From Oculina patagonica (lineage: Eukaryota), in the NCBI RefSeq assembly GCF_052425735.1, contig NC_135769.1, positions 744,001-808,000 of the forward strand: 64,000 nt of DNA, in the 5' to 3' direction. The position numbers were made by a program, and so were the translations under genes. The notes below the pieces were generated by a model, which was not told where the DNA came from, ran no database searches, and saw only the letters and a program-made list of their open reading frames with translations. Position 1 is the stretch's first letter, and every line of letters begins with the position of its first letter. Shown here one piece after another: positions 48,706 through 62,816 of the stretch.

Positions 48706-51700
48706 ATGGCAGGGGTTGAAGATCTTTACAAACAGTTTGGAATCCTCGCAGATGCGAAGGAAAAAGCAGGAGAGGTGAGCTTGATCGAGCTGTCTTGAAA
48801 TCAAATATGGCGCCGATTTGTCACGTGGAAATGCCCGTCAAAATGTTTCTGTTTTATGCAAACCTAATGGACGTTGTTGTTTCGAACTCTTGTTTTTAAC
48901 AGCACGAGAGTGCTTTTCTGCTGATATTGGCTTCTGTGAAGGGTTCACAGGCAGAAAAACGACTGGCTTCTCAGTTTATAGCAAGATTCTTCAAGTTCTT
49001 CCCGAAGTTGCAGGAAAATGCTATTGATGCCATGTTGGATTTATGTGAAGATGAAGATAACATGGTAAGAGAAAGAAATAAGTGAAATAAGCTTACTAGA
49101 ATATCTTTTTATGGAAGGGTATTCAGGTTTTTAACAGACCAATGACTGGGGAGTTAAATGAATCAGAAACTTTTTAACAACACTTGAAAAGTTGAGTAAG
49201 AAAAATAAGAATTTAATGCAAGAAGGAAAAGTGTATTCTAACTTCAAAGCATTGGCTAGATTGCAGAATACCTGCCCACTTTTTGCCTATCACTGAATAA
49301 CAAAATTGCCTATATTGTTATGCCTCATTGTCTAATGTGCTCTAACACAAGCCTGCGACCCAAAGCATGCTCATGACCCCACAAGCTTCACGCTTTAAAT
49401 ATCATTATAACATAGCTAGCAGAGCGGTGCAATCAAATTCAGTATACAAAAGTGTGCTCAAAATCCTGATAGTGCACGCTGATGACATAATTGACGAGTG
49501 AAAATCTCACTGAGTAAAGCTCACACGCTGTGTATGCAAAAGCAATGACATCTTCTCCTCGGAATATGGAAAGTGATTCCTTTCAATATTTTTCCAAGGA
49601 TACGAGCTACAAGGTAAGCTGTTTCTTATTACCAGACAGAGAGCGAAAGAGAAAATTAATTTGATTTTGCCGTCAAAGTTGTTTGTGTGCTTTTCTTCAT
49701 TCAAACAACAACAACTAACGTGCGAGTCTCAAAGGACAAAAATATTTTTTTTCGCTGCACTAACATGGAAGAATGGGCCAACCATGAATGATAACAGTTC
49801 GATGGCACTAAAACCTAGCTACCAAACAAACATTTTTGCATTTTATAAATAAAGGTTTTTCTTTTTTTACTTACATGTAAATGAAGTAGTTGGGTATTCT
49901 GCAGTTGCTTTAACAGCGCATTTTGATACTGATCCTTTCCTATCAAAGCATGCTATTTAACTATAAAAAGAAAATCTGTTCAATTTAACTGACCTTTATT
50001 TTTGTCATAAAAATGTATTACCAGATCAGAAGACAAGCCATTAAAGGCCTGCCAGACCTCTGTAAAGACACACCAGAACATCTTCCAAGAATTGCTGATG
50101 TACTTACACAACTCCTACAAACAGGTAAGCAAATGTTAGACAGTAACCAATATAACAGTTGTATGGATCAAGTAAATTGATTGAGTATGCCGTAGGCTGC
50201 CTTGATTGGCATGTTAGGCTGTACGCTGTCCAGCATGTCAATCAAGTCTTGAGCCTCTTTTGAGTGAAAAAGGCAGTGGTATATTCCATCAGTTTTACAA
50301 ACAGTAGTTAAACTATTAGATAAGAACCCATGTACATGTAAGTGCATGTAATTGACATGCAAATGGTGTAGGTATCCAATTATAAAAAACTTGTAATTGG
50401 ACACCCACATGATTGCACACCAATTACATGTACGTGACATAGAGGTCTGCAGAGAACCATTCAGTATCGATAATTTTGTTATTGATAAATAATAATAATA
50501 ATTTATTAATTATAATTATAAGAATGGTCTTTATTAAAATCTTCAAAAATTAATGGAACGAATGTGTGATTAACCAAATTAAAAGCTTTTTTCCTAATGT
50601 CATGAATTACAATCAGTTTCTGCAAACAGACGTACATGTAGAAGTTTTACTTGAACAATGTTATTATTTTGTTGCCACTGTGGATGTAGCTGGGGGGAAG
50701 TACATGTACTTTAAGTTATAATTTCTAAGGATTCTGGTTATAGTCGGCAAAATTTAATGTACTAGGACATGGGGCTTTGCTTTTTTTAATATTATAAGAA
50801 ATAGTCCTAAGAAATTATTAATAACTTATTGTTAATGTTTCTGTTGCAGAGGATCCTGCTGAATTAACAATTGTTAGAAATGCACTCACAGTATTGTTTA
50901 AAATGGAGCCAAAAGGTAGCTATTTTATAAATTAACCTGACATCATAATCAAATAATGTTTAGCTTCTAAAGATCTTTAGATAAAGTGAGAATTTATTGT
51001 GTATTTTGTTTACATAAAATTTGTGCCACTTTCTACAAATTATGAGTTTTAATGAATTACATAGATATGTTATGCCATCAGATGCAATTTTAGGTCATTT
51101 ATGCTAAATTGCATCATCGCATAATATTAGAAGTCTTGAAGGAAAAAGGTCATGGGATGAAATACACACAACACTGTAGGTTAAGATAAATATTGCAAAG
51201 GTCTAAAAAATGCTCTTGGAAGCTAAATCTTTGTGGTTATTTACATGTAATCCTTGCAGGAACCATTGGAGGACTATTTTCTCAAATTCTTAGTGGAGAA
51301 GAAGCATCTAGAGAAAGTGCTATTAAGTTTTTAAGTGGTGCTGTGGAAGAGTATGGCAAGAAGGTGTTACATCCATCACCTGAAACAGAGGAATACCTTG
51401 TTGAAGAAGTTAAAAAGGTAAGTTTAGGGAAATAGTTGACTTAGTTTCCACATCATTAAATGACAAGTGAAATTTCTACTCCCCATTGAATGGGATGTTG
51501 CTATCCAGAATTTTGTTTTCTGTTGCTCCAACAACTTTGTTGTGGCCTTTTGAGGCAAAGACAGGCATTAGGAGAGAAGTGTTTTGCCGAAACACACAAT
51601 ACAAGCTAGTAAGTAAGTAAGTAAGTAAGTAAGTAACGTCTTTATTTATAGAGGGTAGCACTTAATAGCTATAAAGCTAACAAACTCGTGGCCCTCCTAT

Positions 51701-54700
51701 TTACAAGTATTAAAAAATCTAAGATCTATACACAATAAAAAACCTACGATATACAATAATATACTAGTACCGTAAAAACCCGCAGATAAGCCGCACCTTT
51801 TTTCCAAAAATGTTCGCTCGAAAGCGGGGGTGCGGCTTATCTGCGGGAACATTCGGAAAAGGTGCCGTAAATTTTCGTTAACTGATGCTAATTTATGGAA
51901 AATTATGTAAATAAATATAACATAAAACTACAAGAGAGTACCGGTCATTGCTTTTGCAAGTTTGACAGCTCCTATACTGTTTGCAGTGTCGACAATGGCC
52001 TATAATTGTAACAGTAATATTGATACTTTTACGAGCGAGAAAATACCACGAGTATTCACGAGTAAGATGGCCAATTGTTTCTTTCTCATTTTGCACTTTG
52101 ATGGAAAATTTGTCGAACTGATTACGAAACTCTCTTTATGCAACAAGTTTATCTCCAATAGATGGCTCCCAAATCTCTTTAATTTGTCGATATGATAGCC
52201 ACGAAACCCGAACGACTCCATCGCCATCTTGTTTTGCTTTACGTTCTCGCCCTAGTCCCATATTTCGCGTCCGATCAAATGCCTGGTTACTAAGCTACGA
52301 ACGTTCTGCAAACGCGTGTTCTTGTTGTGTGTGGAAAAACTGCGTTGAATGAAGAAATGCCTGTCAACAAATGCCAGAAAAAGATCACCCATAATATGTC
52401 AAAGTTGGTTTTCATTATATTAAAGAGCTCAAATTGTGGGTAAGACTGAAGTATTTTCTGTTTCAATGTTCATTGAGTTTACGTTCGATGAAGAAGACTT
52501 CCTAAAGACTCAACTTTGGATTTTTGACTCGACTTTGGATTTTCTTTGATTTACTTTCAAAAAACTTTTTTCCAACATTTGAGTTGTTAAACTTGGGGTG
52601 CGGCTTATCTGCGGGTGCGGCTTATACGCGGGTGTTTACGGTAATAGTTCTCACTATAAAGCTGCCCCCGCCTTTTTACAATTTGTTTTTTGTCGCCTTT
52701 AATTATTAATGCCGATGGACTGCACAATTAGGCTTCTTTTTTACTGTGTCATGCGGAATTTCTTGTTGTGTGACACCGTTGCGTCCTAAAAATATTCACA
52801 AGTTCAAGTCGAATTATATTACCTAGCGCGCGGAAATAACACCTAGCGGAAATAACACATAACACATTATTCGTGATGACAACACACAAGCTTATTCCCG
52901 GGCTTATAACATTCAAAATAAACTTACAATAATTTCCAGGCCAAAAAGCCTAAAAAATTCCACGAGTAACAAAATATGGCACATTCAAAGATTCGAGAAA
53001 ACAACCCACTCTTTGGATCAAATAATCTGACAGTTTGTTAGCGATACGAATTACGTTGTACCTTGTACTACATGACAAAGTTCACGCGTTTGTTTATTAC
53101 TCGTTGTAACTTGTAAGATGTATACGATACAACAAACCTCCGAAAGCAAACCTTACAAATGTAACGCTTGGAACATAGGTAGCCGGCACGTAGCCAAGAA
53201 CAGGAAACCAATTGCTCAAAATCTTTCGACGTATTACTAACATTTGCTTCAAATATCACTTAACACAACCAAAGCAGAGAAACCGCTCGAACAAATCTGT
53301 GAACACGCGTAGGCCAAAACCGGAAAACAAAACGCTGTTGCAGATGGCGAAGCTCGAAACGCGAAGGTGACCAAACGCGACCTCGTGGTTGCAAGTTCCC
53401 GACACCACCGTGCGCGCTTGCTAAAATATTACCCGTCACGACCGTGCGCGCCTAGTTTTGTCAAATCGAGAACGCTTCGCCCATTACAAACACATTTCTT
53501 ACTTTTTCAACAAATATTCTTTGTCCTTGTATGTATACACGCGGGGAGTCCTAGGGTGCCTCCTCGGGTTTTGGCCTCTGGGCCAAAACCCTGCGGGGGC
53601 AATAAGAAACGAATTATCAATTAAAAAACTACTTATTAAAAACTAATTAAAAAAACAATCTGTATTCGAAATAAGATCTTAAAGCTAGGACAGTGACTGT
53701 GATTGATCATGGCCTTTTCCTATTCTGTGGATGTTCTGTCTGGCATGCTATAAACCAATAACCTACCTTGAAAATTGGGGATGCATAAGGCTGAGGCCCT
53801 AAGTCCCCAGGCATGATGAGGACAGATAATGATGACAAAATTGTTTTATGGTCTCATGTAGCGTTGTTTTTCATGCAAGACTGTGGTCGGGGATGACAAT
53901 CTCTCGGCTAATAAAATGACAGACAACATGACACATGGCTTGGTTACTGCTTACTCATGTAAATGGTAAACAACTGTGATGTCGTGAATTGTTGTACTGG
54001 TCATGGTGTTTATATTGTATTGATTCTGAGACCACAGCTCTCATCAAGTTTGTGCATATGGTGCATTGTGTATGTTATGTGTTCCTTGTTATTTAATGGT
54101 TATGTTTTGCCACAGGCCATGGCAGATGTTACTGGAGAAGAGTTTCGCACATTTATGACCATCCTGTCATCACTGAAAGTAATGGCCAGTGCTCATCAAG
54201 AACTTGCAGACATCGTGGCAGAACAAGCAGAACTTACCCAAGCATTTCAGGTACTACTTTGAATGGCAAACATGTAGCATGCGATAGCATCCATTTTTTT
54301 CTGCCGCTTGGTAAACAAGCACTGTAATTATTTGTAGCAACATCACAAAAATGTTGATGCTGGTCCCATGCTTATGACCTATCTGCGCATCTGCATTTAA
54401 AAGTTAAAGTTATTATATCAAGTAATAAGTCTAATTTATTTTTCACATTGATTTTTCAGCCTGGTGACGCTGATGTAATTGATAGATTCCTTTCATGTGC
54501 CAGACAAGCAATTCCATATTTTGTGGTAAGTATAATGTTATTTCAATGGCATATTAAGCCCTTGATCTAGACCTTTCATATCTTTAGCCAGCTGAGATAC
54601 TTGTTAGTGTGGTTGACTACGAACTTTAAAGCACGTAATTATTTCGTTTTGTTTCAGAAAGGAGCGTCTGCCCAAATATTCTTTGTGTACATAGTAGAAA

Positions 54701-57700
54701 GTGTTCTACCAAAGCTGAAAGAACTGGCTGCATCAGATGGTGAGGACGTCAAGCTAGAGATGTTGAAATTATGTGCAGAAATGTCACCACATGGTCTGAC
54801 AGATGAAAATGTCAAGGCAGCTATAGAACCTATCTACAACTTACTATTGGTGAGGTTTACATGTATGTCACTTGTGTAGTCTGCTAATGTACTGCCTGGT
54901 ATTTTGTTAGCCTGGTTCACACCAGCAACATAACAAAACAACAGCAAGGTCACGCAAATGCCAAAAACACCTCACATTGATGTTTTATGTCACCAGTGTG
55001 AACAACATAATATACACTGTAAAGACTTAGTTGAAACATGATGACATAAGCATTTAAGCATAAGCATAACGACCTGATCTTTTCTTTATGTCGTTATGTC
55101 CATGTTGTTGTGTCATTACACCTGTATGTCACTAGTGTGAACCAGGCCTTACAGTGTACTGCTAGTGCTTTTGTTATGAATTTGTATTAAAATTCTAGTT
55201 CTGAGAATTATTTACTTTTATCATTCTTTTTTAAGGGCTATAAGGAAGGTGAAGTTACCGGTAACCATCTCCAAGTGGCTTGTTATTAAAAAATATAGAT
55301 TTTGTATTAATTGTTTATTTTTTTTAACTTTTGTACTTCAGGAATACATGCCATTGCCCCCAGGTGAAGAAGAGGAGAAAAGTACTGAAGAAAACTCTGA
55401 GCCAAAGCTTCAGTTTTCCTATGTAGAGTGCCTTATTCTTGCATTTCACCAACTAGCAAAAAAGGTATGCTCCACTTCCTACATTGGACAATGTTTAGCT
55501 TACTTACTTAGGCCTCTTCACACCATGTAAGGCATACATTTGCAAGGCCCAGGGCAGCATTCACACTACATGTATAATGATAAGCTAAAGGAACGTCAGC
55601 TTTAGAGACTGTTTCCTTTAAGTCCCAAACAGCGTTGAAATACTAAATTCTGCTAACCTTTTTAGAAGAAATTCAAGAAGGCAGGCCCTAAAAATAAATG
55701 ACTTGATCATAACAGGAAAACTGCCTTGATTAGCCTTGATTAAAGACCAGATTCTCCCAGGGAAAATAAGTGAAGATAATTATGCAAAAAAAAACCGTAA
55801 GGGGGAGTTTACTGTATATGCAGATGTTAGTGTCAGTAACCTGTGATAGCAGATCTTTGTATAAACTAAAACAGTGGATAGCGATTTTGTCGCATGCTGG
55901 TTGGCTACTCAAACTCCAAAACAAGTAGTGAAACAAGTAGTGAAACAACAGGCTGCTTCTACATGTTTCAAGTAGATTTCAAGTTAGTTTTTGTTGTCTG
56001 TTGTAAAACAGAAGCATTTTTGCATCCAAGACTGCTTTTTCTAACAGAAAAATGACATTTTCTTGTATAGTATGTTGAAAGATTTGTATGTGTATTTATT
56101 TTGTAGAACCCAGAGTTTTTAACTGATACAAGTGCAGCGGAACGTCTTAAAGATTTCCGTCTAAGGTAAAGTTTTACTCAAGACTGTTAGCAGTCCATAT
56201 TATGCAGTCACCTTCTCATCTTGTTTGCCAATTTGATAAAATTGAAAGCCAATCATATGACAAATTAGCAGGGTTTACTGATTAGAAAACCATTCCAATG
56301 ATTATAAGTTAATGATTGCTGTTTATCTTGCCTCAGGCTTCAATACTTTGCCCAAGGCTGTCAAGTGTACATAAAACAACTGAGATTGTCGTTACAGGGC
56401 AAAACAGGTCCTGCCCTTCAGGAGGAGGAAAATAAGATTAAAATTGTAGCACTGAGGACGACTTCAAATATAAATGCTGTCATAAAGGTATGTTGCGAAG
56501 TGAAATGATGTTGGTAGAATAGAGACCTAATTACACTGGAGGCCTTAGCTGTTGGACAAAAATGTCTTTACCACACAATCCATATTGTAACCTATTTCCA
56601 TCGTCGCTAGCCTGTTCCAGGCATTCGGTTAGTTGGGAAGCGGCGCAAGAAACGGCGAGGGAAAAAATGGGGAGGGGACTAAGGCGAGGGCCCCCCCTCC
56701 CCCTTATTTTTTTTTTTCGCTCGCCGTTTTTCGCGCTTCCCAACTAACCGAACGCCTGGAACAGGCTACATCGTCGCCATCTTCGCTACCTAACGAGTAC
56801 CTGTCATTTGTCAAGTGCTGTTCTACAAAATCAAATTAATTAAATTATTGTTGGGTTTACTACATGCAAGCCCTGCGTTAAAAAAATTTGTCCATATTGT
56901 ATCCATTTCCATCCTCGCCATCGCTAGTCATCCTCACTTCCTAATGGGTTCCTGCCATTCCATTCCATTATGGCTGCCACAGGTCGGAACAACGTCGGGT
57001 AAAAAATAAAAGTCAAGGAAAAGTCAGAGAGTTTTATTTTAAGGTTGCTTCAGGTTCTGATAACGAGTGTGATTGGTAACGACCTGACTTACTATGGTCC
57101 ATAGAAACAAAAGCAAATTTAAAGTGTACATTGAACCTTGGCTACTTTTCGTAAGATCTGTCAGTGAAATTGTTTTCTGATCAGTGTCAAGTCAGTACCC
57201 TGCGACTACAGCGCACGTAGTAGCGGGAACGAATGAGAGGCGGCTGTATTCGCAGGCTATTAAGCCAAGGAAATTGTTTTTCTTCGTTTATGGCAACCAT
57301 GTGCTCATATTACAGCGGTATTGAAGCAAGTCATTAATTGTCAAATGATTTGCTCTTTTTTCAGGACCTATTTCATAATCCACCTTCCTTTAAGAGTTCC
57401 ATAACATTATCATGGAAACCACCGGTAAGTGTGAACATGGCCGCAGATGTTGATCATCTTAGTAAGTGTAAATGTAAATTTAGGAATCGTAGTATAGGTT
57501 TACTTTCTTTTAGGCCAGAATGTCCTTCAACCCACGCTATACAAAGGTTTTGTCTACGAACTAAATATTTCCATGTATGTAAGTCATAAAATAATGTCAT
57601 TCCTGTTAATTTGTAGGCGAAGACGCAAACTGCATCCACACTAACATCCCCGAAAGAGGAGAAAAACACGCTAGTAGATGAAAAGTAAGTTTGTTTGTTC

Positions 57701-60700
57701 CACGAAAGGATAAACTGTTGTAAAACATTTAATGCTTGCCCGCCCACAGTCCCTTAGGGTTTACGACTACAATCCTAATTTTTGCGTGTTCCCTCGCAAG
57801 CAAATTGTTTATTTTACTAGACGAGTTGTCACTTAATACGAAGAAGCTTCAAAAAATTGGGCAACAGCGTTGCAGGTTTTTGGAAGGTGATTCATGTTAG
57901 CTACAATAGATGTTGCGTTACAAAAATAGGTCAGCGAGCAATACATCTGACGTTTGTCGCCACAATGTCGAGTAAAAAATCGTCCTTATTAAAAGGCAAT
58001 TCGTGCAACATCGCCATTAGATTTGTAGTTTCGTTTGCATGTCGTGATGTCGTGATGTTTTTGTCCAACATTAGTGTTTAGGGTATTTTCGTACGTAAGA
58101 CTGTTGCCAACTCGGCTTTAGCTGAATAATGGTGATGTCATGTTTATATTTTTAGTTGAATGCGGAAGTGAATTGGTTCCAAATGGATGATTTCAGTTGT
58201 AAATAGGAATGAGTAAAGTTCAAAGGATTAGTATTTTTGGGCAGTGGTTCTTAAATGGGAAGGAGCGTAAAGAATATTGGTTTATATAATAGTGATAAAA
58301 TTCCCAGCGATAAAAATGGTATTCTAAATATAATTTGTACAGGGGAAAAATTTAAAAGCGTTGAATTAATGTTCTCAGTTTACTTTTGTTTTGGTCACGC
58401 GATGCTTGTAACTAATCGGAAAAATCTGTATTCGATAATTTAGTTTCCTTGTATTAAACTAGGAAAGTAAGCTGAGATGCGCTCTTTTCTGAAAATTCGA
58501 TCTGCTTTCTGCCATTGAAAGGGAATGGAGATATAGCATACAATGTGTAGCGTGAAGTGTGACGTTACCTTTTATCACGTGACGTGAGAATATTAATGCT
58601 CGACCAAATTTTTAGAGTTTTGTTTTGACATTTCGTCATTGTTGCTAAATACCTCTGCGAAGACGTTTGAAACGATCAGTCGAAACACTATCTTAGCGAC
58701 GAGTCCAGACACAAGTAGCGAATTCGTCGTTCGCTTCATCCTGTTACTCACGAGCTAGTCGAAGGATTTATTTCCTGAACTGTTGTTGTTTTGTCGTCGT
58801 CTCCTGCTCGTTAGTGCTCGACTGATTGGTTTTGTTGTCTTTGCTTACGTTGCAACTCTTGCTGCAAATACAAATGCAGCAACTACAACCCAAGAAAACG
58901 CCAGTTTAAGCGTCTTCCAACACCATGCCTCGTTTTTCGAGGTCACGGAATTGCAATCACTTTTCAGTAAATATCGACGTCAACTATGGAACAGTAGCTG
59001 TCGGCGAAGACATTGTCGTGAACGTTAATGGTCATGCTAAAAGAAAGAAGAACTTTGATCGACTTGAAGCAAGTGAATGTCGAAGAAGAAAACGGAGCGA
59101 TCGCAAGCGTTTGAAGAGACTTCACCGCAGTGGCTCAAGGTCTACCACTCCAAGCGTAGACGAGGAAACGAGAGACGCAACACTGAATGAGCTTGCACTG
59201 GGGAACGAGAGCTCCAGTTTGCAGCAAGCCCTGCAAATATTTCGCTGTTGTATTACTCCATTGCATCCCTTACGTGACAATGGCTGCTGGGATCAATTTG
59301 AAAGTGCTGCAGACCACCTTTTAGATGAATCAGCCGGTGATTCGACCCGCAAAATCATCATCTGTCTTGAAAAAAGTGTGGTGTTGAGTATCAAGAAACA
59401 GCTTGACCGGTCAGAGGAGATGATATGTGGAGTGGCGGACGAGATTTCACAGACGAGTGGTTCAGTTCGGCTGTTACTTGAAGTTCTCTCGAAGTGTTAC
59501 ATGGCTGGACTTAACCGCCGAAGAAGAATGCTTGGTAAAGCGGAAGAATGCTTGAAGACTGCCAAGAAGGTGGTATCTGGCTTCCCTCCTTGCTTAGCTG
59601 TGGCTTTATTACTGTACGAGGAGGGGAGCTGGCACCGAGACTTTGCTTCTCTTCTCACTGGCTCGAGGAATGAGCCTGTCATTGCCAAAGCCAAAGAGAA
59701 AGCAAAGGAGCTGATGCAGCGCTGTATCGACTTGTGTTGGCGGTTGGATCATGACCAGGTGTATGTACGCAAACAACACTTCGCTGTGTGCAAAATGGCG
59801 ATGATCGATCTCAGGTGTGAGACAAGCGCATCCAGGAGAAAAAGCATTCCTCCAAAGAGCATCCAAGAAGCCAGAAAAAGCCTGGAAACTCTTCAAACAG
59901 ACAATTACACCAAGAGGGAGGTGCAAGGCGCGAAGATTCAGCGTTTAATCGCAAAGGTAGACTTCAGCTATCGCCTGGAAAATTTCGACGAGGCTGAAAA
60001 GTTCGCGCAGGAGGTGCTGAATATGGCTAAAAAGTTGGAATTTAATTTGGACGTGATTCCTCTGGAAGAAAGACTTCAGGACATCCGCCGACAAATTACA
60101 GCTTCATCAACGAGCGAAACATTTCGACATATTCCTGGAATAATTGATTCATCTTCTGGGTCATTCTCTTCCAAGAATAACACACCATACTCGTCAGACT
60201 ACGAAGACAAAATATAAGTAGTGTTCAAAACTTGTGTTCAGTTCCCGTTGGTAATGTTTTGTTTTTTTCTGAATGAATTATTTTTATAGTAAACGGCATC
60301 CTCAGACAGTGAGAGGCAAACAAAAAAAGGTTGATACAGTACAATATTCCGATGTTTTGTGACTGTAAATTTAATAATTTAAACACCTCAGGATAGGTTT
60401 CTTCGATTGTTTGACTTTGAACCGCAATTATTCATAAGTTGGTCAAGCTTGCTCGATCAAGGGTGGATGAATATTGGCCTAGCTCGTGCTATGCTTATAA
60501 ATTTGGTCTGTGTTTACTCAGGATAGTAGTAATAATAATGATAATATAACTTGGCCATATCAGACCATCTTGACCTTGAACACGCGTGGCTTATAATCTA
60601 TACATAGATGTACATATTTGGTGTAGATGGAAAACGTATTCTGTGATGCGGGCCGTATTGTTGTCGCTTGGCAACGTCTATGATTATCTCTTGACAATTT

Positions 60701-61811
60701 TTTGACAGCTTTCTAATGGGTTTCTTTTAAAGTGGCCAATCAGAGTTCGAGAACGGAAAGAGTGGAGCTACTCGAAACAGAAGCCATCAAAAAAGATGTC
60801 AAGAAGTTTTCACAAATTAATCAAATACTTTATCAAGTGGCAACAGAATAACGGTCAGCATTGTAAACATGAAACAGGGTTTATGTGAAAGCTCGAAGAG
60901 ATTCCCTTGGTGGCCGTTTGTTCTACTTCATTTCGCCTTCTTTGAGGTGACATCTTTTTTGTTGAGTTTGGTTTTGATCCCCATGGAGGAATAGATGATA
61001 GAATAACTAGGGGAATAAGTCAGCGAAGTGCTTACGTTGCGTTGCATCATCAGAAATCTGAATTCTGTGAATTTAAATTGGTTACGATATCATTGTTGTA
61101 AGCGTTTTCCCTAACATGTTGATGAAGTAAATTTAGTGTATAGAGGTTTTATAACTAGAAGCTTGTCGAAGATTAACTGTTGGAATGATGTTAACTAAAA
61201 GTAATCTAAATTCTGTGAATTTTAATGTACAGTATTACGATATCGTTGTTGTGTTTTAACTAACGTTGAGGAATTGCATTAAACATTAGGCAAATAGTAG
61301 TTTTGCATCTCATTATTACCAGATTTACTGTAAAAAGTATGAACGAAAACTCCCTTCAAGTAACTCTGGATAAATTCTGTACAGTATGCACAAAACCTCG
61401 CAGATTTTTTTTACTTGAGCCGAGGTCTTCTCATCCTTGCTTTGCTTTGGTGATAGTAGTTCTCATTCCTCCCGAGTGGTCCGCAATCACAAGCGTTGCA
61501 TATGGAGACTTGTCAGTGTAAGATTCACTAAGCAATGGAATCTCATTATTTATTCTATCTCGTTATATTTCCGCAGGCGAAAACGTGCAGGGATCACGCC
61601 GATCAAGTTCGACCTTCCACCCGAGACGAAACAAGCTAAAAAGCCCAAGGGAAGCACAGTCACAGTGTACACTCCGCCTGGTCGGCGTACTGGAGCGTCA
61701 AACGGCGAAGTCAAGGGTCAAACCATGCCTGAGGGAGGACGGGGTCGGGGATTTCGACAAGGGGGACGGAACCGAGGTCGCGGACGGGGCTGGAGAGGAG
61801 GCAGATATTAG
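48706..61811 (+). CDS. API5: Apoptosis inhibitor 5
   Basis: MAGVEDLYKQFGILADAKE...KRLASQFIARFFKFFP...IRRQAIK.LP...RIADVLTQLLQ...DVTGEEF...EYMPLPP...LQFSYVECL...LKDFRLRLQYFA...DLFHNPPSFKS, then an RG-rich tail. Exons: 48706-48774, 48903-49064, 50025-50124, 50850-50915, 51260-51417, 54116-54250, 54460-54525, 54658-54849, 55342-55464, 56107-56165, 56337-56487, 57365-57424, 57617-57684, 61577-61811. Confidence 0.96.
51770..52641. mobile_element. pogo/Tigger-like non-autonomous element (TA TSD) nested in an older insertion with a (TAAG)n tail
   Basis: ta|ccgtaaaaacccgcagataagccgcacc ... gggtgcggcttatacgcgggtgtttacgg|ta. (taag)n at about 51609-51635. Confidence 0.85.
53881..54037 (+). ncRNA. Candidate intronic box C/D sno/scaRNA (orphan)
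   Basis: 8-bp terminal stem ctgtggtc/gaccacag directly encloses a 3-nt bulge + GATGA (C box GGGATGA, 53890-53896) and a CTGA D box (54026-54029). It has a long internal hairpin and ends 78 nt upstream of the 3' splice site at 54115. Confidence 0.6.
54910..55148. mobile_element. PIF/Harbinger-type MITE
   Basis: tta|gcctggttcacac ... gtgtgaaccaggcc|tta. Confidence 0.75.
56608..56768. mobile_element. AcademH-like MITE with 9-bp TSD CATCGTCGC
   Basis: tagcctgttccaggc.ttcggttagttggg ... cccaactaaccgaacgcctggaacaggcta. TSD at 56599-56607 and 56769-56777. A half copy starts at 62732. Confidence 0.88.
58925..60217 (+). CDS. Nested intronless gene, 430 aa: RHIM-like N-terminal motif, basic NLS-like segment, TPR-like alpha-helical domain
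   Basis: Uninterrupted 1293-bp ORF with caccATG context, noticeably more GC-rich than the flanks. It lies wholly within the last API5 intron (57685-61576). Helix pairs such as MLGKAEECLKTAKK, KAKELMQRCIDLC and ENFDEAEKFAQEVLNMAKK have TPR-like spacing. Confidence 0.8.
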   Translation: MPRFSRSRNCNHFSVNIDVNYGTVAVGEDIVVNVNGHAKRKKNFDRLEASECRRRKRSDRKRLKRLHRSGSRSTTPSVDEETRDATLNELALGNESSSLQQALQIFRCCITPLHPLRDNGCWDQFESAADHLLDESAGDSTRKIIICLEKSVVLSIKKQLDRSEEMICGVADEISQTSGSVRLLLEVLSKCYMAGLNRRRRMLGKAEECLKTAKKVVSGFPPCLAVALLLYEEGSWHRDFASLLTGSRNEPVIAKAKEKAKELMQRCIDLCWRLDHDQVYVRKQHFAVCKMAMIDLRCETSASRRKSIPPKSIQEARKSLETLQTDNYTKREVQGAKIQRLIAKVDFSYRLENFDEAEKFAQEVLNMAKKLEFNLDVIPLEERLQDIRRQITASSTSETFRHIPGIIDSSSGSFSSKNNTPYSSDYEDKI

Positions 61812-62816
61812 ATGGTTTACTATTCTCGAACGTCCCATAGAAAGTGCAGAATTATTTTTATTAGCTTGCGAACTTTGTACAGTTGACTTAACTACAACTA
61901 CAAGTCAGGACTGGGTTATTTATGGAGAAGACTATAATTTGAGTTAGTTCGCCTTGCTCATAAGCTTTTTTTAACTCTATCTTCATGCGCCGTCCAACAG
62001 ACGTTAGTGTACTTTAGAAAATGCTCAGCAGTGTTTTTTTTAAGTTGGAAATTTTGAAAGAATAATAGATTTAACTACGGAGTAAATTATTGAACAAGAC
62101 TCCAGAAACCCCAGGTTTGAGCGTCTGGGATCGTTGTGCAAAGACGAATTCAAAATTGTAGCAACAGAGCACTTGATAATATTCATCAGTCTAACGTTAC
62201 AAATTAAAAGGTCGTATCGATTTTTGGTGATACTTGTTGCTCTTTCGAATCCGAAAAGACTATTGATCGGTTTATTTTGACAGTTTATTGTCCAGGCAGG
62301 GATAGTCCAAGCAGAAACAACATAACATCAATAGCTTTAGCATTAATTACGACTTGACGTCTAAGTAAGTAATTCTGCCCAAACGTTCCCAGGTTTCTTA
62401 GCGTGCGAGGCTGGAGTCCAGTCTTCCTGAGGTTTCTGAAGTGGAAAGTGACTTTTATTTTGTTTTGAGATCCAGTTCAGTTGCCCTTTTTAGGCGAGAA
62501 GTCAAATGCAGTGATGATAACGATCAGCCTATGTACATCAACCCACTTTCGATTTTTCTTGACGTTAAATTTCGATCATCACGATCTTTGGTGCCTATAA
62601 AATAAAAGGCTGTTATGTTTCTTTAATGTGTGTCTTGTTGCTTCATCGCCTGTTTCCTAAGTCGGTTTTTGCAGATCATTCTGTGCCAATTAAAAGCTGG
62701 TTAAGTGACGTGACAGGTTTCTTTCCAGCTGTAGCCTGTTCCAGGCGTTCGGTTAGTTGGGGACTAGCTCGAAGAATGGCGAGCGAAAAATTAGGGGAGG
62801 GGTGTAGAGGAGAATT

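Follow-up and report, generated by a model that had tools for sequence, protein, structure and literature searches.

An intronless gene for a predicted TPR protein with a RHIM-like motif, nested on the same strand within the last intron of API5 in Oculina patagonica

Introduction

Nested genes are common. The 64,000-nucleotide stretch of the Oculina patagonica genome analysed here (hereafter the window; contig NC_135769.1, positions 744,001 to 808,000 of the forward strand) holds a candidate of this kind, an intronless open reading frame (ORF) of 430 codons located between the last two exons of the apoptosis regulator API5. An original prediction made from the sequence alone described this ORF as an intact gene, probably with its own promoter, encoding an uncharacterised TPR-like protein. 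The locus raises the questions of whether the ORF is a gene in its own right, how it coexists with its host, and what its product might do. The explanation favoured here, which is considered probable, is that of a genuine nested protein-coding gene transcribed from its own promoter, whose product serves as a scaffold of a general kind. All, or nearly all, of the gene falls inside the last API5 intron, and its orientation is that of API5. Window coordinates are used throughout, and all of the listed features are located on the + strand (Table 1).

In Drosophila, 71% of nested genes are antisense, while 72.5% of the same-strand ones consist of a single exon, a bias that was ascribed to selection against mis-splicing (PMC3814207). 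The single-exon structure of the present gene fits this pattern of tolerated same-strand nested genes.

Expression of the nested gene from its own start

The API5 (PF05918) exons upstream of the ORF occupy 48882-56487 on the same strand, and an API5 match was obtained at only one locus. Expression was examined using Logan contigs of four small public runs (X1-X4, with three organism labels) placed on 56250-62200. Contigs of all four runs contained the consecutive GT..AG joints 56485>57363, 57423>57616, and 57684>61577, and the runs therefore hold spliced mRNA. By the last of these joints API5 is spliced over the nested ORF. The same joint established, to the nucleotide, the boundaries originally predicted for the end of exon 13 and the start of the terminal exon, and it connects 61577-61811 to API5. 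Translation across the joint agreed with the predicted phase-2 donor, in which AA|G specifies Lys, followed by RKRAGITPIK... and ending in the RG-rich tail.

The predicted ORF was found intact and uninterrupted between exon 13 and the terminal exon, with TAA as its stop codon. The ATG stands in the context ACCATGC, which has A at -3, and an in-frame TAA is located 18 nt 5' of it. The ORF is expressed, being covered in all four runs by contigs that extend ~1 kb beyond the stop. Essentially zero depth was found in X1 and X2 over the initial ~1 kb of the intron that follows exon 13 (57842-58637), as well as over intron 12, and this silent segment provides an internal control against DNA or pre-mRNA contamination. 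The contigs of the nested gene begin at 58680 (X2) or 58795 (X1 and X4), preceded by zero depth at 58439-58637, and no contig joint leads from 57684 or any other API5 donor into the ORF in the four runs, although rare isoforms could drop out of contigs. The silent upstream intron and the lack of an API5-ORF joint thus imply that the nested gene has its own start, and the contig starts place it between 58638 and 58680. These observations bear out the prediction of an independent promoter rather than an alternative last exon of API5. A compact cluster of TGACGT, CACGTGACGTGA, and ATATTAAT just upstream is a plausible, putative core promoter. The CpG observed/expected ratio is 1.39 in 58400-58925. 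E-box and cAMP response element (CRE) hexamers recur upstream of family genes, at a frequency not clearly above chance.

The possibility that the ORF represents an alternative API5 terminal exon, or that its translation depends on API5 transcripts that read through or retain the intron, is raised by its orientation on the same strand, the AG dinucleotides near its start, and the potential loss of rare isoforms from contigs. The missing 57684-to-ORF joint and the intron that is silent up to 58640 render this highly improbable, as do the in-frame stop preceding the ATG and the originally noted phase mismatch between the API5 donor and the acceptors near the ORF start, which was upheld. Furthermore, related copies are found antisense to API5 and outside of API5. 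Some orthologs have been called ~70 amino acids longer, but their extensions translate the 5' untranslated region (UTR) rather than API5 exons; because all of them contain the conserved internal start MTNA, they are gene-caller artefacts and not fusions.

Purifying selection and copy number

Comparison of the coding sequence with a 95%-identical ortholog gave a dN/dS of 0.092 (dS 0.25) and with a 69%-identical ortholog a dN/dS of 0.176 (dS 1.07). These values are far from 1 and indicate that the nested gene is under purifying selection. A chance ORF was considered and ruled out, as a length of 1.3 kb at 46% GC, 88 homologs, and dN/dS values of 0.09-0.18 lie far beyond chance.

The genome contains one copy at this site and 21 other matches of 23-39% identity, which form two tandem arrays plus one stray. 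The arrays, at C9:14.73-15.10 Mb and C13:21.67-21.69 Mb (L002-L020), comprise ~20 intronless paralogs of 329-695 amino acids. The intronless structure and the multi-copy family, together with a Pao retrotransposon in the homologous intron of one other assembly (L023), might suggest an accessory gene derived from a transposable element (TE) or virus that landed in the intron. Such an origin is scarcely credible, however, given that the paralogs are diverged, sharing only 23-34% identity, and arranged in tandem rather than dispersed, that the gene is conserved in position, and that it is under purifying selection. In addition, the Pfam search of the window protein revealed no reverse transcriptase (RT), transposase, or integrase domain, and no terminal inverted repeat (TIR) or long terminal repeat (LTR) was found flanking the ORF, in agreement with the original prediction; nor were near-identical copies with TE termini present.

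A long-standing position at the 3' end of API5

A word-indexed search identified 88 homologs, ranging from 95% to 31% identity, with all but two at 40% or more, and an exhaustive profile search of 1.84 billion representative proteins recovered no more than 192 relatives. The nested position is conserved: in five other assemblies, subfamily copies follow API5 exon 12/13 in sense and/or antisense orientation, with copy numbers from 1 to at least 5. The API5 terminal exon is located beyond the copies in three of the five (L021, L022, and L024), where its peptide is 85-90% conserved. L021, at 69% identity, is collinear with the window, containing exons 12 and 13, a same-strand ORF, and the terminal exon. 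In L022, API5 exon 12 and the terminal exon enclose an antisense copy (P0012) and a 508-amino acid sense copy, while in L024 antisense and sense copies precede the terminal exon and two more paralogs follow API5. Exon 13 of L023 is followed by two copies, the first antisense and the second sense, with a Pao retrotransposon between them, and the contig-mate of L023, L025, carries two further paralogs ~7 kb and ~16 kb past the sense copy. Five copies follow exon 13 in L027, in which the terminal exon lies beyond the stretch fetched. The element in the homologous last intron of L023 (L023:3174-8492) is a full-length Pao-type LTR retrotransposon ORF with RVT_1, Pao, and integrase domains. The Logan contig L026 was set aside as expression evidence, being collinear genomic or unspliced sequence.

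A quick maximum-likelihood tree revealed three well-supported clades, consisting of the window single-copy genes, the sense copies, and the antisense copies. Their branching order was not resolved, and the tree did not place the window clade as sister to either the sense or the antisense clade. In the assemblies compared, the 3' end of API5 is thus a long-standing home of the subfamily, with copy number and orientation that are specific to the lineage.

Architecture of the predicted protein

Alignments divide the protein into five parts: a motif at residues 12-36, a basic stretch at residues 39-68, a Ser-rich acidic linker, a helical region at residues 93-399, and a C-terminal tail. In the AlphaFold2 model, residues 93-399 form 16 helices, mostly with a predicted local distance difference test (pLDDT) score >90, arranged as a right-handed superhelix of paired antiparallel helices. 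In structural alignments with VIA-align, this region scored highest against APPBP2 (Z 22.8 over 288 residues), followed by MalT domain III at Z 19.2 and by Rap, TSK/TONSL, and LGN at Z 18-19; the STAND TPR sensor 6mfv was also matched. Foldseek searches of the PDB agreed, returning weak generic TPR matches, and sNASP was among the best structural matches. The Pfam TPR cut-off was not reached by the window protein (TPR_12, 15.3 bits vs. 30.1), and weak TPR_12 matches occurred in 61 of 64 family members, with a best E of 5.5e-7. The region is therefore confidently predicted to be a TPR superhelix of the peptide-binding type, and the TPR-like character originally ascribed to the protein is borne out for its C-terminal part.

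Foldseek searches of the AlphaFold database (AFDB) clusters recovered this domain from uncharacterised entries, in which it frequently follows other sequence on its N-terminal side; one of these, an entry of 876 amino acids, is auto-named "Caspase-2". The matches from a feature-based search of the ESM Atlas all scored below 0.9 and were confined to generic TPR, MAU2, or TTC29 clusters. The long relatives contain an extra unannotated middle domain. An extra middle domain of ~100-150 amino acids, likewise unannotated (..GRSRSGFPDC..LLVCKNQ..GYLFRFHEPDTKYKISFSL..), is carried by the C9 paralogs. The relative P0121 (719 amino acids) is a fusion in which a canonical TPR_12/TPR_1 array (E 7e-25) precedes both the middle domain and the helical domain of the family, indicating that the module has been shuffled. 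The family tail follows the consensus SSSGS..SSKNNTPYSS(D/E)YEDK(L/I).

The basic stretch resembles a nuclear localization signal (NLS), and its composition leaves nuclear targeting of the protein an evenly balanced prospect.

A RHIM-like motif near the N-terminus

The N-terminal motif is the best-conserved segment outside of the TPR fold, with a mean identity of 56% (alignment A3) as opposed to 38-41% for the whole protein. The surrounding region is predicted to be disordered, with pLDDT <50 in the AlphaFold2 model. The family consensus is VNIxxNSGTVVVGDNNVVNV, in which N20, G22, and G27 are nearly invariant. The motif alignment A3 was converted to a profile of 27 positions, and among 177,635 distinct PDB sequences the three top matches of this profile were RIPK3 RHIM-fibril constructs (7dac, 12kl, and 7da4/8z94; E 0.05-0.075), with the alignment to RIPK3 falling on the RHIM core VNIYNCSGVQVGDNN. 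The next matches were LpxA hexapeptide beta-helices (E 1.6).

The flanking pattern of a RHIM, consisting of h-N-h and N-x-G before the core and D/x-N-N with alternating hydrophobic residues after it, within a disordered region, is present in the family. The core tetrad (I/V)-Q-(I/V)-G is absent from the window protein. At the same position, VQIG occurs in the orthologs P0042, P0047, and P0049 (AVQIGDHNVVNV) and VQVG in P0028 (TVQVGDYN), while paralogs from the same genome contain IQIG (L004, L005, L012, and L013) or LQVG (L010) (IMQIGRENV, CLQVGDDNRVVF). More distant relatives have TQIGRRNEI or CLQLGDHNNF at the motif position. Many of the paralogs in the C9 and C13 clusters also carry canonical RHIM-type tetrads (IMQIG, CLQVG). 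A structure prediction with four copies of residues 1-60 gave a score of 0.05, which speaks neither for nor against assembly. On the strength of these alignments the motif appears RHIM-like, and the protein is not assigned to the RHIM family.

Divergent RHIMs have been reported in invertebrate immune-type proteins (Kajava et al., 2014, PMC4262963), and a survey found no RIPK1 homolog in cnidarians (PMC12119088). Among the papers covered by a literature search, none linked RHIMs to corals, dealt with this protein family, or described a gene nested in API5.

Models for the function of the protein

The TPR domain, as modelled, would likely bind a ligand, either a peptide or a protein. Homotypic and possibly amyloid-type assembly, in turn, could be driven by the RHIM-like motif, whether among molecules of the protein, with its ~20 paralogs, or with further RHIM-like proteins; for assembly among family members, the prospect is close to, though somewhat short of, an even one. 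A protein combining these properties would act as an adaptor or sensor scaffold, perhaps in the nucleus, with signalling in innate immunity or cell death as its most plausible setting. This role in immune or cell-death signalling is put forward tentatively. A more elaborate proposal, which at present seems rather unlikely, is that corals and their relatives, which reportedly lack RIPK1-type kinases, have placed a RHIM-type amyloid module on a new chassis, composed of the RHIM-like motif, a basic linker, and a TPR sensor. The founding locus would have been kept in the last intron of API5, and the tandem paralogs would constitute a diversified receptor or adaptor repertoire that co-assembles by means of the motif.

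Several findings weigh against these interpretations. The PDB profile match is borderline (E ~0.05) and in effect concerns one protein. The window tetrad is V-A-V-G, which has no RHIM glutamine and is followed by EDI instead of DNN. The threshold of Pfam RHIM (PF12721) was not reached, with no match to the window protein and only two of 64 members at E 0.19, and a search of the whole genome with this model gave five weak matches, none at family loci. Pfam scans, which took in 63 homologs, 9 paralogs, and 10 long relatives besides the window protein, yielded nothing but TPR-type matches below threshold; NACHT, caspase, TIR, death-fold, and kinase domains were all missing, and a P-loop NTPase domain was likewise absent from this set. 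The sole homolog of the family with a source name is a hypothetical protein from the scleractinian Desmophyllum pertusum. Concerning the transcript, the RNA status of the four runs was inferred from spliced joints, and the contigs carry no strand, cap-site, or poly(A) signal, such that transcript orientation and ends were inferred from the ORF.

These points give some weight to an alternative in which the protein is a plain nuclear TPR scaffold, either a TONSL/TSK- or NASP-like binder of histones or chromatin or an APPBP2-like substrate receptor, and the conserved segment near the N-terminus forms a beta-strand or serves as a linear motif with no relation to RHIMs. The top structural matches (APPBP2, MalT domain III, Rap, TSK/TONSL, LGN, and sNASP) and the strongly basic NLS-like stretch agree with such a function, the glutamine is missing from the window motif, Pfam RHIM remains below threshold, and hexapeptide beta-helix repeats of LpxA come directly after RIPK3 in the profile search. 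On the other hand, a motif unrelated to RHIMs has to be reconciled with its 56% mean identity inside a disordered region, with an unsupervised search whose top PDB matches were RIPK3 RHIM fibrils aligned on their core, and with canonical VQIG, VQVG, IQIG, and LQVG tetrads at the same position in orthologs and paralogs. A plain nuclear scaffold is accordingly regarded as a possibility of some substance, though a less probable one than the nested gene with a general scaffold product.

Comparison with known signalling systems

Adaptors containing RHIMs include RIPK1, RIPK3, TRIF, and ZBP1, Drosophila IMD and PGRP-LC/LE, and proteins with divergent invertebrate RHIMs (PMC4262963). The family studied here resembles them in having a motif of ~20 residues within a disordered region, with the pattern h-N-h-x-N-x-G-x-h-h-h-G-D-N-N-h and a profile that falls on the RIPK3 core, and in the I/V/L-Q-I/V-G tetrads of some members. 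It differs in the VAVG tetrad of the window protein, which lacks glutamine and scores below the Pfam RHIM threshold, and in that the family motif is joined to a TPR solenoid, with no kinase, death domain, TIR domain, or Z-alpha domain.

The amyloid motifs of fungal and bacterial NLR systems (HET-s PFD, PP, and BASS; STAND proteins with TPR sensors) offer a second parallel, in which a short N-terminal amyloid-type motif is combined with C-terminal TPRs. The match to MalT domain III (Z 19.2), the match to 6mfv, and the diversified paralogs in tandem clusters are further similarities. Unlike these systems, the family has no NACHT or NB-ARC NTPase between the motif and the repeats, and no effector gene bearing a corresponding motif was identified next to its members. 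Peptide-binding TPR solenoids (APPBP2, LGN/Pins, TONSL/TSK, and Rap/NprR/AimR) correspond to residues 93-399 in fold and size (Z 17-23, 250-288 aligned residues), but share only 7-13% sequence identity with the protein, and Pfam TPR is below its threshold.

Coexistence with API5

Each of the four runs contains both spliced API5 and the nested transcript. Coverage in X1 and X2 reaches ~61224 and drops near 61225, whereas a single 1354-nt contig of X3 spans 60260-61606 and enters the last exon of API5 by 30 nt. The stretch downstream of the ORF is single-copy in the genome at identities of at least 90%, the other copies of a short repeat within it being 70-87% identical, so the contigs there derive from the nested locus. 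As originally predicted, AATAAA is absent between the stop codon and 61577, and the sole ATTAAA, at 61278, lies in a ~100-nt noncoding block that still aligns to the 69%-identical ortholog locus (L021). The suggestion that the nested gene may share the API5 3' end is thus partly supported: the X3 contig is consistent with it, and the drop in X1 and X2 and the conserved ATTAAA point to an end within the intron. The nested transcript is expected to end either near 61300 or, in at least one organism label, within the last exon of API5. The block surrounding the signal is tandemly duplicated (61052-61099 and 61200-61252, with a spacing of ~150 nt), and ATTAAA is kept only by the second copy.

Transcription or polyadenylation of the nested gene might also regulate API5, whether by interference or by intronic polyadenylation that yields API5 without the basic/RG tail, an idea that would make the nesting functional in its own right and that is compatible with the nested gene being an independent unit. 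In the unspliced last intron, the frame at 57680-57690 reads GAA AAG TAA, which places a stop one codon past exon 13, and an intron-terminated API5 mRNA would encode a protein without the entire basic/RG tail. Beyond this reading of the unspliced exon 13, regulation is favoured by the retention of the nested position in several assemblies, the precedent of H13/Mcts2 (PMC13309782), and the one run (X3) with read-through from the 3' part of the nested gene to the last exon of API5. Nevertheless, 57842-58637 is not covered and no alternative joints were found in the four runs; moreover, orientation and copy number vary among assemblies, which argues against a strictly strand-specific mechanism, and synteny may persist merely because the site is a home of tandem duplication. 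No API5 transcript ending in the last intron was seen in the four runs, although contigs could miss rare forms, and neither the originally suggested competition with API5 mRNA completion nor a functional coupling of the two genes draws support from these data. Regulation of API5 by the nested gene is thus considered improbable, and less so than the two readings that deny the nested gene its independence or its cellular origin.

Other same-strand nested pairs, in Drosophila (PMC3814207) and at mouse H13/Mcts2 (PMC13309782), similarly consist of a single-exon gene in a host intron with both genes expressed. The gene nested in API5 differs from them in being old and conserved rather than a young retrocopy, in its location in the last intron, in the presence of both sense and antisense copies in the API5 intron of relatives, and in the lack of observed intronic polyadenylation of the host.

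The novelty of the locus rests less on nesting itself than on the persistence of the subfamily at the 3' end of API5 and on its unannotated RHIM-like/TPR architecture. It is less common for a same-strand, single-exon gene to keep to one intron of a conserved apoptosis regulator across genomes while being expressed and under purifying selection, and the locus offers a clean natural system for studying the coexistence of host and nested genes. The family, for its part, combines a domain of the TPR sensor type with a motif whose closest resemblance is to the RHIM of RIPK3. Should the motif drive homotypic or amyloid assembly, RHIM-based signalling would exist in cnidarians without RIP kinases, a result of consequence for how amyloid signalling arose in the immunity and cell death of animals and for the biology of coral stress and disease. 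The more elaborate proposal above would, if true, extend RHIM signalosomes to Cnidaria and physically link a pro-death or immune adaptor to the anti-death gene API5.

Features of the locus

Table 1. Features of the nested gene and adjoining API5 exons, in window coordinates.
Feature	Position	Strand	Basis and remarks
API5 exon 13	57616..57684	+	Phase-2 donor AA|GT; flanking joints in all four runs; frame check
Putative core promoter: TGACGT, CACGTGACGTGA (E-box/CRE/unfolded protein response element (UPRE)-like), TATA-like ATATTAAT	58560..58600	+	Sequence; 40-120 nt 5' of first contig
5' UTR, minimum extent (at least 245 nt)	58680..58924	+	Contig starts; contains 11-codon upstream ORF (uORF)
Nested coding sequence, 430 amino acids, intronless	58925..60217	+	Stop-free ORF; dN/dS; RNA contigs in four runs
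RHIM-like motif, residues 12-36 (HFSVNIDVNYGTVAVGEDIVVNVNG)	58958..59032	+	Motif alignment A3; PDB profile search
Basic NLS-like stretch, residues 39-68, KRKK...RRRKRSDRKRLKRLHR	59039..59128	+	K56, R60, R62, R65 nearly invariant
Predicted TPR-type alpha-solenoid, residues 93-399	59201..60121	+	AlphaFold2 and structural alignment
Ser-rich/acidic C-terminal tail, SSSGS..SSKNNTPYSSDYEDKI	60122..60214	+	S409, S415, S416, N418, S424 nearly invariant; predicted disordered
3' UTR, approximate (~1 kb or more)	60218..61300	+	RNA contigs; insert resembling a miniature inverted-repeat transposable element (MITE); conserved block with ATTAAA
API5 terminal exon, basic and RG-rich tail	61577..61811	+	Joint 57684>61577 in four runs

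The sole upstream ATG of the mapped 5' UTR opens the uORF (58874-58909), which is in frame with the main ORF and stops 15 nt before the main ATG. The conserved start of the orthologs (MTNA/M) has been lost in the window protein, which begins three codons later. Within the 3' UTR, the MITE-like insert extends over ~60632-60980, with inverted arms at 60772-60801 and 60948-60977, and ~18 related pieces of 70-87% identity are present on other contigs. At 60246-60413, a contig of X4 (organism label C) swaps 166 nt after the stop codon for 417 other letters, representing an insertion/deletion polymorphism of the 3' UTR and not a splice.

Two further observations concern the host gene. In the API5 intron between exons 11 and 12, the segment 56648-57260 is covered very deeply in every one of the four runs, by hundreds to thousands of contigs, and shows numerous loose ends together with short internal joints, a pattern resembling that of expressed dispersed repeats or TEs. 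A block at ~53867-54259 in API5 is 84% conserved in L021, which is unusually high for an intron; L023 splits it into two separate matches, and part of it may be an API5 exon.

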